Part shown: positions 27,962 through 33,440 of the stretch, one piece after another
How positions within the stretch are numbered: position 1 is the first letter of the stretch
Layout of the letters: the number at the start of each line of letters is the position of its first letter
DNA from: Haliotis cracherodii
Lineage: Eukaryota
Length of the DNA stretch: 64,000 nucleotides
Assembly: GCF_022045235.1 (NCBI RefSeq)
Contig: NW_027266265.1
Span: 38,130,001-38,194,000, forward strand
Direction: 5' to 3'
Position numbers and translations under genes: made by a program
The notes under the pieces: model-generated
The model's database searches: none
What the model saw: the letters and a program-made list of their open reading frames with translations, nothing else
What the model was told of the DNA's origin: nothing

Positions 27962-28914
27962 CTCAAACCAAAACATAAGTCTCTTTTCAATATATAAACA
28001 TGGCATGGTCGCATTAGAACATAGTTTCTCTCTCGAGTAATTGAGCTGTACGGTCAGTTAAACTGTACCGGTTACACTGAAAATATGTTCTAATTCTACG
28101 AACAGAAGGATATTTAAAGATGAGAGAACATTTTAAGAAATGTTCGTGTCGTAATTGCATATTTTGTAGCGCGAAGACTTACGTCTTCCTGATAAGAAAG
28201 ATGATAATGTGCGTGTTGGGAGGCGTTAATAAAATCCTTGATTCATGGGCATCGAGAGTGGTTACGCTTGAAAACCAGTTTATATTAATCGACAAACGTC
28301 ATATTCAACGCTTGTTGCGATTGGTTGTAAAAACGCGCCGTACACGGTTATTTACATCAAACCGTCCACACAAAATAAGCGATACATTTTCCCATTGAAA
28401 TAACAAAGCCTCGTTTTCGATCCTGAGGAGAAGACGCTTCAGTCACTGTCAACGCTGAGGGAACGTTTTGGATTTGTGTGGTGGGTAGACGTTATAATTT
28501 TCCTGTATGCACTTTACACATTTCAATAAACAATAATCAGGATTATATTCACGACAAGAACACACGTTAATAACAAGCAGTTAATGAGAAAATACACTTG
28601 AAATGTTCGATGCGAGCGGTAGAGGACATTTTGGACGAATTCACTTGGTTCCCTATGGGGGTGTGCAATTTAGGAAAGGGAGGTAATTCTCATTACGGTA
28701 GAGAACTCTCGTTTGTTTACCTTATATGAGTTCACTTGTGTTTATTTTGAAACAACCACATCAAGTAATTCAGTTTTTTACAACAATATATTGTTAATAC
28801 GCTGTTATGTTGTTAAACAGAACGTTGACTTCTATCTAGATTACTATGACAACTAGTTTGAATACTATCACCGCGACTATTTCAACATATGATCACTCCT
28901 CAATTTTGGTTGAT

Positions 28915-28916
<2 letters not shown>

Positions 28917-28959
<43 letters not shown>
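28917..28959. repeat. (CA)n microsatellite inside the transposon 5' region
   Basis: Direct reading. Confidence 0.95.
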
Positions 28960-28961
<2 letters not shown>

Positions 28962-29889: not shown

Positions 29890-29980
29890 TATGTGTTGCC
29901 TGTTTTGAAGACCCTGCCCTGATATTTCAAACTATGCCTGGAACTGGAACTAATCTTGGAACATGTGACAGAGCTCAAAT

Positions 29981-32296
29981 ATGAACTGTTCATTTTATAC
30001 TTTGATCATTTTGATATTTGTTAGCAACTCCAAATGCCCAATGGAAAGTCCACTCATGGCTCTAGGGGGTGAAGGGGATATACTAAGTATAACCTTAAGA
30101 GTGTCAAAACTAACACTAATAGAAGAATACAAGAGGCTAACACCGACAGGGAACAGCTTCAGTAAAGATATTTGTAATGGGGTCATTGGTTTTGTCTGCA
30201 ACAAACATCATCTTGATAGCTCATTTGTTTTGTTTGACAAAGTATCACCTGTCCTACAGTCTTACTTAAAGAAACTAGTATCAAAGCATGATAAGACTAA
30301 GAGAGAGGGGGGAAAGCAATTTAAACACCTACTTGTAACCTGGGAAAATGAATTCTATGATCTCAAAGTTGTTGTTTCTGAACACTGTTTGCCATCAATG
30401 TTTTCTAAATTAGAAAAAGAGAGAAACTTAAAAAAGGAGTATTATCGTAAATATAAATCAGTGATCAAAAAGGCTAAAAGGCTGCAATCTAAAACTGTGT
30501 CTCTTAAAAAAAGAATTCGAAAGATGTCTACAAAGCCCTCACATTTGGATGGGAAGAAGTATCGAATACTGAAAGTGTCGTCCAATGAAAACACTTTGTC
30601 GAGATCACAGCAATACAAACGAAAACACATGCTGGTAGAAGACTGTAAAAAAGCCCTGACTTTCATGAACATTTATGAACTAGACCCATTATCAGTACAG
30701 GCACAAAGGACAGATGGTCAAAAGTGTTTAGTTTCTTTAACTGAAAACAATGTAACCAGTCATAAGGAAAATATGGACACTAATTTAGATAGACTTTTGC
30801 ATGTCAAAGATATGCAAAATATTTCAAACAAAGCATATCATGAGTTATCAATGACAATACCGTTTTTACCAAGGTCACATGTTTTGTCTCAAAAGATAAA
30901 AGAATACAATGATACTTTCAAAATAGTTAACACTCCAGATCCTAGTTTTGGTGTACAGCAATCCCTGAAAGATATATTAGGTAAATGTGTTTCACACATT
31001 TTGACAACAGGGGCTAAAGAGAAGCTTCTTGAAAGTAAACATCTGCATGTTAAACTAACTGGTGATGGTACTGAACTTGGCAGGACAAAAAAATTAATAA
31101 ATTTCGGGTTCACCATACTCGAGGAGGAAAACTGTCTATCTGTTAATGGCAATTACTTACTCGCTGTATTTTCAGGGAAAGAAACGTACCAGAATGTTTC
31201 AGATGCACTTACAGAAATCATTGATGAAGCCAGAGAATTAGACCATGTAGGTGTTCTTGGACAAATATTTCAGGTGACTTTTTTTCTGGGTGGTGATCTT
31301 AAGTTTCTGAACATGTTCTCAGGAATATCATCATGTGCTTGCAACTACAGTTGTGTGTGGTGTAAATGTCCATCAAAAGACCGATATGACACCACTATGC
31401 AGTGGTCAGTTAGTGACGTTTCTCAGGGAGCAAGAACTGTACAGGAAATATCTATGATGGCCACAAGAAAGTCACATAACTTTAACTGTGTTCATCCTCC
31501 CCTGTTTGACTTTATTCCAATCAATAGAAGAGTTCCAGATCTGCTTCACTTGTTTTTGCGCATATCCGATCAATTGGTAAAGCATCTTATCACAGAGTTG
31601 AGAGTTTTGGACAATGTCCAAAGGTGTAATAGTGTGTACAACAGAGATAGGTGTTGCAATGTCTCCAGATTTGAAAGATTTGTGCAGGGCCTTGGGGTGG
31701 AATTTCATTTTAAGAATGATAAAGCTTCGGGAAGATTCATTTTCCGTGATTTTACCGGACCAGAACATAAAAGGATTTCCCAGCATATTGTCATTACAGA
31801 TTTTCTTCCTAATCATCCCAAAGTGAAGGAAATCAGCTTTCTGTGGAGTGAATTCTCATCTATCTACTCCATTCTTGGGCAGGGTTCTTTTGAGGAGTGT
31901 GAAGTTGTCTCCCTTAATGAAAGGTGCAAGCAATGGGTACGGACACTTGTGATGGTTTACCAAATTAAAGACGTGACGCCTTACATGCATATCTTAGCAT
32001 ACCATGTCTGTGATATGATAAGACTTCATGGAAATCTGAGATGCTTTTCACAGCAAGGCTTTGAAAAGTTAAACGACAGTGTTACATCATGGTTCTTCCG
32101 CTCAACATGTCACAGGAGTAGGGAAGCATTGAAGCAGGTTATGCTAAAACAAAACAGGATGGTTTCTTCTCAGAGTTTTAGGAGAAGTCCTTTGAAAATA
32201 AAATGTAGTTTGTGTCAAGGGCAGGGTCATAATAGGCGGTCATGTACCAACAAGAATAGAGAAATTGAGTCCGATGGACACCTAGATCTGGCATGA
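29981..32296 (+). CDS. RAG1/Transib/Chapaev-clade DDE transposase (RAG1-core-like), 771 aa, intact; true start may be the ATG at 30041
   Basis: Uninterrupted ORF. Motifs VKLTGDG (D362), GGDLKFL (D439), CVWC (C458/C461), PDLLHLFLRI, TPYMHILAYHV (H670/H675) and FSQQGFEKLN (E695) correspond to RAG1 KESCDG, GYDEK, CTLC, DALH, TNYFHKTLAHV and SEGNESGN. Also a basic LSRSQQYKRK segment and C-terminal CSLCQGQGHNRRSC. Confidence 0.9.
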   Translation: MNCSFYTLIILIFVSNSKCPMESPLMALGGEGDILSITLRVSKLTLIEEYKRLTPTGNSFSKDICNGVIGFVCNKHHLDSSFVLFDKVSPVLQSYLKKLVSKHDKTKREGGKQFKHLLVTWENEFYDLKVVVSEHCLPSMFSKLEKERNLKKEYYRKYKSVIKKAKRLQSKTVSLKKRIRKMSTKPSHLDGKKYRILKVSSNENTLSRSQQYKRKHMLVEDCKKALTFMNIYELDPLSVQAQRTDGQKCLVSLTENNVTSHKENMDTNLDRLLHVKDMQNISNKAYHELSMTIPFLPRSHVLSQKIKEYNDTFKIVNTPDPSFGVQQSLKDILGKCVSHILTTGAKEKLLESKHLHVKLTGDGTELGRTKKLINFGFTILEEENCLSVNGNYLLAVFSGKETYQNVSDALTEIIDEARELDHVGVLGQIFQVTFFLGGDLKFLNMFSGISSCACNYSCVWCKCPSKDRYDTTMQWSVSDVSQGARTVQEISMMATRKSHNFNCVHPPLFDFIPINRRVPDLLHLFLRISDQLVKHLITELRVLDNVQRCNSVYNRDRCCNVSRFERFVQGLGVEFHFKNDKASGRFIFRDFTGPEHKRISQHIVITDFLPNHPKVKEISFLWSEFSSIYSILGQGSFEECEVVSLNERCKQWVRTLVMVYQIKDVTPYMHILAYHVCDMIRLHGNLRCFSQQGFEKLNDSVTSWFFRSTCHRSREALKQVMLKQNRMVSSQSFRRSPLKIKCSLCQGQGHNRRSCTNKNREIESDGHLDLA

Positions 32297-33440
32297 AGTG
32301 CACATATGTGCTAATACTAACTTTTAGACCGGGTGTTCACTTTAATGATAGGATAAATAATCTACCTGATAAACTGAATTTGAACTGAAACATAGTTCAA
32401 ATGAAACAAAGCAGTTTTAATATGTGTGAAGGTTATACACATTTTTTATGCCTAGCATTTCATTTCATATAACATTCCATTATGATTCGTTGGTTAAAAC
32501 ACGTTTTGTGTAGGGTACAATGCTCTTCAAATGAAAAGGGTTTTTTATTTAGTGCTATTGAATGTGACATTGTTTCAGGGAATATTTGAGACGTTTTGTT
32601 AAACTTTTCTGTACATGTAACATGTTTGCACAGACAGCGAATATGAAAGTGTACAAATGGTATTTCAGTAGTGACATTATAAATGATACGATCTGAGACG
32701 GCAAGCCATTATAACAATAATTTAGTCAATATGTTGCACCAATGAAGTTAAGGGTATCAGTAACATGTCTTTTAAAATAGTTTTTACACATTTCACTATA
32801 CATATCACCAAAGAGCAGGTGGGTATGGCTTGGTGAGGAATACACCATGTTAGTTTATGCTGCAGACTGTCAGTAAAGAAAACTTAGTCGGGGTCGATAG
32901 ACATGGCAACTCTCAAACAGTTCAGTTACATTTTAATGCATCACCAGCAACGTCCTATGCAGAAATACGTTTAGTTTATTAGTAAAGGGATTTCTCCATT
33001 GTGTAATAGTGGACGTTCGCTCGGAGGGCAATTTGGTTATCTCAGTTGAAATCACAATCATGATTTTGATTGAAACAGTTCTTCTCCCTAAGTTTAAATT
33101 GTGCTTTGGAAAACTAATATGGGGCAAATATAGTGCCATTGTTTCTGCATTTACCTCTGCAGAACATATTTCCTGTATGGAAATATTAGATGTCTTGAGT
33201 ACCCTCGACTCATGTTTCGATTACTTTTTTTTATAGATTCGTCATTAATAAACATGTTACAACATACACAGATTTGGTCTTATATTCATTAAGCTTATTG
33301 GTGAGTCGATATTCCAGAAATGTTTCTAGAATGAACAGCTTCAATTTACTGTGTAGACACCCCCATAACATGGACTCTCCCATTTCGTTCTGAAAAAGTA
33401 GGTCACGAGACAAAAAGCAGTGATATGTTTTGACTTGATC

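Follow-up and report, generated by a model that had tools for sequence, protein, structure and literature searches.

The window analysed here, a stretch of 64,000 nucleotides from Haliotis cracherodii (contig NW_027266265.1, positions 38,130,001 to 38,194,000 of the forward strand), carries at 27964-33437 a transposon with two genes: a large one, open reading frame 2 (ORF2), encoding a transposase with a RAG1/Transib fold, and a small one, ORF1, encoding a predicted chromo-barrel protein. Taken as a whole, the explanation that we consider likely, with real reservations, is a two-gene RAG1-fold transposon of a large unnamed lineage of the CMCT clade, in which ORF1 would serve as the chromatin-reading partner of the transposase. 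Of this, the sequence data show a recently active, autonomous cut-and-paste DNA transposon of that lineage, with ORF2 as its DDE transposase and ORF1 as its dedicated second gene, passed on with the transposase over deep divergence; the chromatin-reading role is the inferred part. Positions are those of the window unless a locus is named, and the principal features are as follows.

27964..33437, + strand: whole transposon, 5474 bp, inside a decayed mariner; limits based on three other copies (98.6-99.3% identity, unrelated flanks)
27964..27977, + strand: left terminal inverted repeat (TIR), CAAACCAAAACATA, with 12/14 bases matching the right end
29188..29889, + strand: ORF1, accessory protein, 233 amino acids (aa), with a chromo barrel in the model (aa 34-75) and a conserved C-terminal alpha/beta domain (aa ~84-217)
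29981..32296, + strand: ORF2, DDE transposase with RAG1/Transib fold, 771 aa, identified by profile, Pfam matches of its relatives, and AlphaFold2 (AF2) and Foldseek
31064, 31295, and 32063, + strand: D362, D439, and E695, catalytic candidates of ORF2, invariant or nearly so in alignment A1
ORF2 residues C458/C461 and H670/H675 (zinc ligands) and L522-H523 ('LH' motif): invariant or nearly so in A1
ORF2 aa 742-755: C-terminal CX2CX4HX4C knuckle, conserved
33424..33437, + strand: right TIR, TATGTTTTGACTTG, ending ...GACTTG, constant in 6 copies

Limits and Copies of the Element

A six-frame search of the 1.18-Gb assembly with ORF2 recovered three further young copies, on contigs C56, C16, and C67, with 99-100% protein identity to ORF2 and open frames, together with an intact 54% paralog on C1 (locus L016), intact paralogs at 27-29%, and many decayed copies. 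When positions 26000-35500 were compared by BLAST with the three young copies, similarity began at 27963/27964 and ended at 33437, within 1 bp of the limits proposed in the initial annotation (27963-33438). The start of the left end is identical in seven genomic copies, and the first and last bases of the window element recur exactly in two older copies whose ends are 80-93% identical to its own. The copies share their ends at unrelated sites, and the proposal of one TIR-bounded mobile element with two genes is upheld. The inverted repeat noted in that annotation is real but short (14 bp), with 12 of 14 bases in agreement between CAAACCAAAACATA and CAAGTCAAAACATA and termini of the form 5'-CA...TG-3'; elements of other species end in the related termini CATATCAAAACC and CATGTCAAAAAA.

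ORF2 is intact in 4/4 young copies and ORF1 in 3/4. In the C56 copy (L013), ORF1 has a frameshift near window-equivalent 29746, and ORF2 is open. A DNA run contains a 4-base deletion at the same place, which may correspond to this frameshift.

The Transposase

As a single sequence, ORF2 has no Pfam match and no sequence match in the PDB. Its 27 unnamed relatives, which include a protein of the sponge Ephydatia, are 29-39% identical to it, and a profile built from an alignment of 22 family sequences (A1) matched, among all PDB sequences, only RAG1 and RAG1L proteins, namely zebrafish RAG1 (E 3.9e-5), mouse RAG1, and amphioxus RAG1L (BbRAG1L; E 2.5e-3). The resulting alignment with RAG1 pairs 'GGDlKFL...sCiWC' with 'GYDEKMV...ICTLC' in the D-CxxC block, and 'TPYmHilavHv...QQGlEkLN' with 'TNYLHKTLAHV...SEGNESGN' in the HxxxxH-E block. 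Seven of the 22 family members match Pfam RAG1 (PF12940; best E 1.4e-5), and 0/22 match CACTA Transposase_21 or DUF1280 (PF06918), the latter being unmatched by ORF2 itself.

The predicted structure points the same way. With the AF2 model of ORF2 (predicted local distance difference test score, pLDDT, 78.9) as a Foldseek query, all 49 matches at E <= 1e-3 were RAG1, BbRAGL, or HzTransib (best E 1.1e-15, template modeling score up to 0.67, ~570 columns), and the next match was Hermes, at 1.9e-3. D439 and C458 are separated by 19 residues and H675 and E695 by 20, a spacing equal to that of D708-C727 and H942-E962, which we take to be the RAG1 equivalents and which is consistent with the A1-RAG1 alignment. 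The identification of the large protein as a RAG1-like transposase, made in the initial annotation, is supported by the profile, by Pfam matches of its relatives, and by the predicted fold.

Conservation of ORF2 starts at ~aa 35 (30083), so the true start of ORF2 may be M21 (30041) or M26 (30056). The N-terminal ~270 aa are mostly helical in the AF2 model, with long helices (H85-109, H139-182, H208-232), and the N-terminus has no zinc-finger Pfam match, no Chapa, and no RING finger. Searching 1.84 billion representatives with a profile yielded 9,713 clusters at E <= 1e-3, of which 1,189 reached E <= 1e-30, and none of the clusters examined carries a name or a Pfam domain; the family is very large and unlabelled. 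In a language-model atlas, ORF2 is nearest a DUF1280 (Chapaev) cluster, followed by RAG1 clusters. A Pfam scan of the window's genome for PF12940 and PF06918 gave 0 matches, with the positive controls equally silent.

The Accessory Protein

The open frame of ORF1 (29155-29889) begins with a mechanical TTG. In alignments with the paralog and with Haliotis rubra LOC124277184 (50-53% identity), the conserved region opens with MPPTLR (29188), and the gene is therefore placed at 29188-29889. The chromo-barrel/Tudor-knot domain previously ascribed to the small protein was recovered by Pfam (MSL3_chromo-like, 4.7e-7, and Tudor-knot, 1.2e-4, at residues ~30-80), by PDB sequence (Eaf3, 2e-7), and by fold. 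In the AF2 model (pLDDT 81), the barrel aligns to MRG15 at Z 4.8, with a root-mean-square deviation of 0.8 A over 42 residues. Four aromatic positions, F38, Y58, W61, and W68, remain aromatic in homologues (alignment A2, 19 homologues); these correspond to the methyl-lysine cage of MRG15/Eaf3. ORF1 is thus like the MRG15/Eaf3/MSL3 proteins in its chromo-barrel fold and aromatic cage positions, and unlike them in having no C-terminal MRG domain detectable by Pfam. No kelch was detected by Pfam or by fold.

The best-conserved part of ORF1 in A2 is its C-terminal domain of ~150 aa (W162, R165, N168, G171, D172, T180, and F213), modeled at pLDDT ~90. For this domain, Foldseek and a wider structure search gave no fold match above Z 4.4 and only weak, inconsistent ones (PYL/Bet v 1, AcrID1), with no recognisable DNA-binding fold, and a search of the language-model atlas gave no usable match. 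In lineages L047, L065, and L111 the barrel is absent and the C-terminal domain is kept. In these alignments, the conserved core of the partner is its C-terminal domain, not the barrel. The initial description of the partner as a chromo barrel holds for the window lineage; it does not extend to the three barrel-less lineages or to L123, described below, which has a canonical chromodomain.

Conservation of the Gene Pair Across Lineages

In the window, the open frames of ORF1 and ORF2 (29155-29889 and 29981-32296) are in tandem, co-oriented, and 91 bp apart, and the coordinates agree with those first reported. The tandem pair is kept in the 54% paralog L016, which has similar ends (CAAATCAAAAGTTA... 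and ...GATGTTTTGACTTG). Between the window element and L016 only the two ORFs are conserved, with no nucleotide or translated similarity elsewhere, and a third conserved gene or an upstream exon was rejected on this comparison. L016 has, between its genes, a tandem array of ~144-bp units (L016:7424-7927) that originate from the ORF1 3' end; through this array, a spurious 167-aa ORF arises on the other strand.

Metagenome contigs were scanned with the transposase profile, which gave 79 loci, and the partner was sought with a hidden Markov model of ORF1 homologues. The partner gene was found at 56 of the 79. It lies downstream on the opposite strand (convergent) at 53 of these 56 loci and upstream in tandem, as in the window, at the other 3; the tandem layout of the window is a minority form, and the convergent one is usual. 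At 17 of the 23 partner-less loci, the contig continues for <1 kb downstream. The WLWD01 assembly contains three subfamilies of 3.8-kb elements, with copies 97.6-100% identical, in which the transposase and a convergent partner lie between TIRs (for example, CATATCAAAACC...GGTTTTGATATG). Wherever ends were mapped, in two subfamilies each of the window's genome and of WLWD01, the partner is inside the shared ends. Partner proteins have only 20-35% identity across loci, and their co-inheritance with the transposase is therefore old.

A more distant lineage of the window's genome, L123, whose transposase is 27% identical, has a tandem upstream ORF of 177 aa with a canonical chromodomain (PF00385, 3e-7). 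This lineage has at least two copies, on contigs C45 and C5.

L123:4074-6389, - strand: transposase of the L123 lineage
L123:6405-6938, - strand: chromodomain ORF
L125:6464-7015, - strand: chromodomain ORF of the second copy

The small ORF of L123 carries 'HWWYTLNQHGEG', resembling 'DWWYRIINPAGDF' of ORF1 (a WWY...N..G type motif). Homology of this small ORF to the ORF1 C-terminal domain was considered and rejected, as the hhalign comparison was not significant (E 0.4) and the homologue search was empty.

The possibility that the two frames are exons of one gene was also examined. ORF1 homologues stop ~10-15 residues from a conserved FVRGDGN motif, and this end just past the motif indicates two separate genes. 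A spliced ORF1-ORF2 fusion was further rejected because most lineages encode the partner on the other strand, because one contig is unspliced across 29783-29980, and because no transposase-partner fusion proteins were found.

Target Sites

Flanks were compared for 15 independent insertions, 6 in the window's genome and 9 in WLWD01. No insertion shares three or more flank bases (0/15), and 2/15 share two, which fits chance. A single shared flank base occurs at 9/15, versus 3.75 expected, with 2/6 in the window's genome and 7/9 in WLWD01; the WLWD01 insertions with the same single base on both flanks are among L048, L074, L061, L050, L052, L053, and L046. The sharing in WLWD01 may represent a 1-bp target duplication. 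The split mariner is colinear over the junction with other mariner copies, without gain or loss, which is weak support, as those copies are only 70-84% identical. A duplication of 0-1 bp could result from a blunt or 1-nt-staggered target cut, or from repair-mediated insertion of excised ends. The described relatives that were found make duplications of 2-5 bp (PMC12730594, PMC4079192).

Insertion Site, Non-coding Parts, and Surrounding Sequence

The sequences on either side of the element match one set of diverged mariner copies at other places in the genome, and the element therefore splits a mariner, as had been noted; Pfam places a transposase fragment of that mariner in the left flank. This fragment and the non-coding parts of the element are as follows.

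27795..27908, + strand: left fragment of the host mariner transposase (context, outside the element), Pfam Transposase_1 (PF01359), E 5.6e-6
27965..29187, + strand: 5' non-coding part, 1.2 kb, with a polymorphic (CA)n near 28905-28960 and a non-conserved 92-aa ORF (28120-28398)
32297..33423, + strand: 3' non-coding part, 1.1 kb, not conserved with the 54% paralog

The (CA)n microsatellite at 28905-28960 varies in length among the four young copies, and the BLAST alignment is interrupted at 28860-28960. The 3' non-coding part (32297-33423) has no remnant of a convergent ORF1 copy. A joint between 27931 and 33479 in one DNA run (X15) was considered as an empty site and rejected: it has 22 matching letters on one side, 73 flank bases are also skipped, and another mariner copy is a more likely source than an empty allele.

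Outside the element, two arms of 58-61 nt, 88-90% complementary and ~6.7 kb apart (27337-27543 and 34173-34308), flank the mariner/transposon nest. They contain a (GTTT)n-like run, and their likely source is one short repeat present twice in opposite orientations, either a short interspersed nuclear element (SINE) or a miniature inverted-repeat transposable element (MITE). The window has three ORFs of at least 180 aa, at 29155-29889 (+), 29981-32296 (+), and 18100-18672. The two ORFs of the element, initially described as the only long, intact, non-repeat ORFs of the window, were confirmed as long frames, two of only three of that length. The third ORF ends just beyond the most skewed 2-kb bin of the window (16001-18000, GC skew -0.618), a skew suggestive of a simple or satellite repeat with strand bias.

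Relationship to Described Transposons

Transib, TransibSU, Chapaev, and Chapaev3 were grouped together by Kapitonov and Koonin (PMC4411706), and the CMCT clade has been characterized by C(2)C and H(3-4)H motifs, 5'-CA...TG-3' ends, and duplications of 2-5 bp (Kojima 2025, PMC12730594). The motifs and ends are present in the window family, which on these sequence features is assigned to the CMCT clade, whereas target-site duplications (TSDs) of 2-5 bp are not seen (0/15 share >=3 bp). The term "RAG1-like" holds for the whole Transib/Chapaev/CACTA (CMCT) clade.

The window family is neither a RAGL nor a Transib in its TIR, TSD, or partner. Its likeness to RAGL/ProtoRAG lies in a RAG1-core-fold DDE transposase with a C2/H2 zinc site and a C-terminal zinc-binding tail, in a dedicated second gene placed tail-to-tail at 53/56 loci (tandem in the window), and in a second protein with a histone-reader-type module, comparable to the PHD finger of vertebrate RAG2. 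It differs in that the partner combines a chromo barrel with an alpha/beta domain that has no fold match, versus the kelch propeller of RAG2L, that the transposase has no N-terminal NZD or RING, that its TIRs start with CAAACC or CATATC rather than the CAC heptamer, that its duplication is 0-1 bp versus 5 bp, and that its sequence similarity to RAG1 is at profile level only. With Transib, it has in common the fold (HzTransib, Foldseek E 4e-12), the DDE triad, and 5'-CA...TG-3' ends; Transib, however, encodes only a transposase and has 5-bp duplications and TIRs resembling recombination signal sequences, whereas the window family has two genes, no such TSD, and another TIR.

DUF1280 has been equated with Chapaev transposases (PMC3985635), and Chapaev elements have CAC...GTG ends, duplications of 3-4 bp (TWA), and C(2)C, LH, and H(4)H motifs (PMC4079192). 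The window family shares with Chapaev and Chapaev3 the C(2)C (C458xxC461), LH (L522-H523), and H(4)H (H670x4H675) motifs, an animal host range, and, as its nearest atlas cluster, DUF1280. It differs in having no Chapa zinc finger in ORF2, no PF06918 match in ORF2 or the 22 relatives, ends of the form CAA...TTG or CAT...ATG, and no 3-4 bp TSD. The literature found on Chapaev and its relatives mentions no chromo partner gene.

CACTA/En-Spm elements belong to the same broad CMCT clade and have a comparable two-gene logic, with a transposase (TNPD) and a small helper (TNPA), but Transposase_21 is unmatched in the window family, the helper is unrelated, and CACTA elements have a 3-bp duplication and occur mostly in plants and fungi. 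Chromoviruses (Ty3/gypsy) and LEDGF-guided HIV integration resemble the window family as mobile elements choosing chromatin via a histone-mark reader; in those systems a retroviral-type integrase carries the reader as a fusion or recruits it, whereas here it has a gene of its own in a RAG1-fold DNA transposon. Searches of the literature found no description of a RAG1-fold transposase paired with a chromo partner, in keeping with the earlier remark that this architecture was not recognised as described. The searches covered published papers as distinct from Repbase/Dfam, and, given its great size, the family may have been catalogued earlier under another name.

A Proposed Mechanism and Its Alternatives

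Domain content and co-inheritance make it reasonable to infer that ORF1 is the chromatin-reading partner of a RAG1-fold enzyme. In such a mechanism, ORF2 would recognise the inverted repeats and would probably cut through nicking and hairpin formation, as RAG and Transib do. ORF1 would dock to the transposase or to the transposon ends through its conserved C-terminal domain, while its MRG15/MSL3-type chromo barrel would read a methylated histone tail, so that a given chromatin state could attract or license transposition. Integration would proceed by a blunt or 1-nt-staggered target cut, a step proposed because the insertions have no duplication of >=2 bp beyond chance. ORF1 would then be a functional analogue, built from unrelated domains, of the RAG2 PHD finger acting on RAG1.

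Several observations weigh against this reading or fall short of it. No partner is seen at six metagenome loci with sufficient flank, and two distant transposase lineages of the window's genome (L122 and L124) are without a detectable one; for these reasons the pairing is not universal, although the conserved linkage inside shared termini that was initially proposed holds, over many diverged lineages, for the clade nearest the window (the 54% paralog, 56/79 loci, and WLWD01). The L047 group looks young (99.9% identical copies) yet has no barrel, and the barrel is therefore not essential for mobility. RNA or DNA can also be the ligand of such chromo barrels, and binding of a histone mark, such as the methylated H3K36 or H4K20 bound by MRG15/Eaf3/MSL3 proteins, is here a prediction. 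No precedent for a 0-1 bp duplication was found among described relatives, and the integration step may differ from the one assumed. Placement of the family relative to Chapaev and Transib is tentative and follows sequence features and profile matches. In same-organism runs guessed to be RNA, only short contigs were found (29400-31452, depth 2-8), covering the two genes and not the non-coding arms; they hint at transcription, weakly, given the guessed label. A complex prediction with ORF2 aa 40-765 and ORF1 aa 32-233 scored 0.00, which counts neither way.

The strongest alternative, which we judge unlikely though worth serious attention, is that ORF1 is a nucleic-acid-binding cofactor for the transposon ends or transcript, like CACTA TNPA or the PIF/Harbinger Myb-like protein, with the barrel acting as a DNA/RNA-binding Tudor knot. 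The Pfam Tudor-knot match would fit such a role, as would the better conservation of the C-terminal domain than of the barrel and the existence of young lineages without a barrel, and the sister CACTA group is generally known to offer a two-gene precedent with a DNA-binding helper. Against it, the methyl-lysine cage aromatics (F38, Y58, W61, W68) are retained, the C-terminal domain has no recognisable DNA-binding fold, and the independent L123 lineage has a canonical histone-type chromodomain, which points to selection for a chromatin reader.

It is improbable that ORF1 is instead a regulator that protects or dampens the element, by competing with host heterochromatin readers or inhibiting the transposase, and is not a needed subunit: a purely inhibitory gene would rarely be kept so deep, in both orientations, and in compact 3.8-kb elements, even though lineages without a detectable partner exist and the complex prediction gave no interface (with the same proviso as above). 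Least credible by far is that ORF1 is a passenger fragment of a host gene without a role, or that the pair is a domesticated host locus. MRG/MSL3 chromo-barrel genes do occur generally in animal hosts, as is commonly known, but ORF1 has no MRG domain of the kind found in host MRG15 proteins, four near-identical copies lie at unrelated sites, the pair is kept in the 54% paralog and lies within the TIRs of multi-copy elements in two genomes, and it recurs at 56 loci with ORF1 proteins only 20-35% identical. A passenger carried by one horizontally spread recent family is excluded, since the metagenome loci are diverged. We retain the two-gene transposon with a chromatin-reading partner as the favored explanation.

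Significance

RAG1 depends on RAG2, the PHD finger of which binds H3K4me3 and activates cleavage, and how and why a RAG1-type transposase gained such a partner is a question in the origin of adaptive immunity. The window family would add a second case in which a RAG1-fold enzyme is linked to the gene of a chromatin reader, the two being mostly convergent, and intact, nearly identical copies of the element allow direct testing. The points added here are the convergent layout at 53 of 56 loci, the barrel-less lineages that keep the C-terminal domain, and insertions without a duplication of >=2 bp beyond chance. The missing target duplication would widen the known target-joining geometry of this enzyme class, and recognition of the ~9,700 unnamed protein clusters in the transposase family would improve the annotation of invertebrate genomes.

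A bolder version, which we hold only tentatively and think somewhat doubtful, is a large, overlooked marine-invertebrate sister lineage of RAG/Transib, in which a RAG1-fold transposase would be paired tail-to-tail with an obligate, non-kelch histone-methyl reader and would integrate by a blunt or 1-nt-staggered cut. If this were true, the design of the V(D)J recombinase, a catalytic subunit joined by a partner that reads chromatin, would have evolved twice, or would predate the pairing of RAG1 with RAG2.

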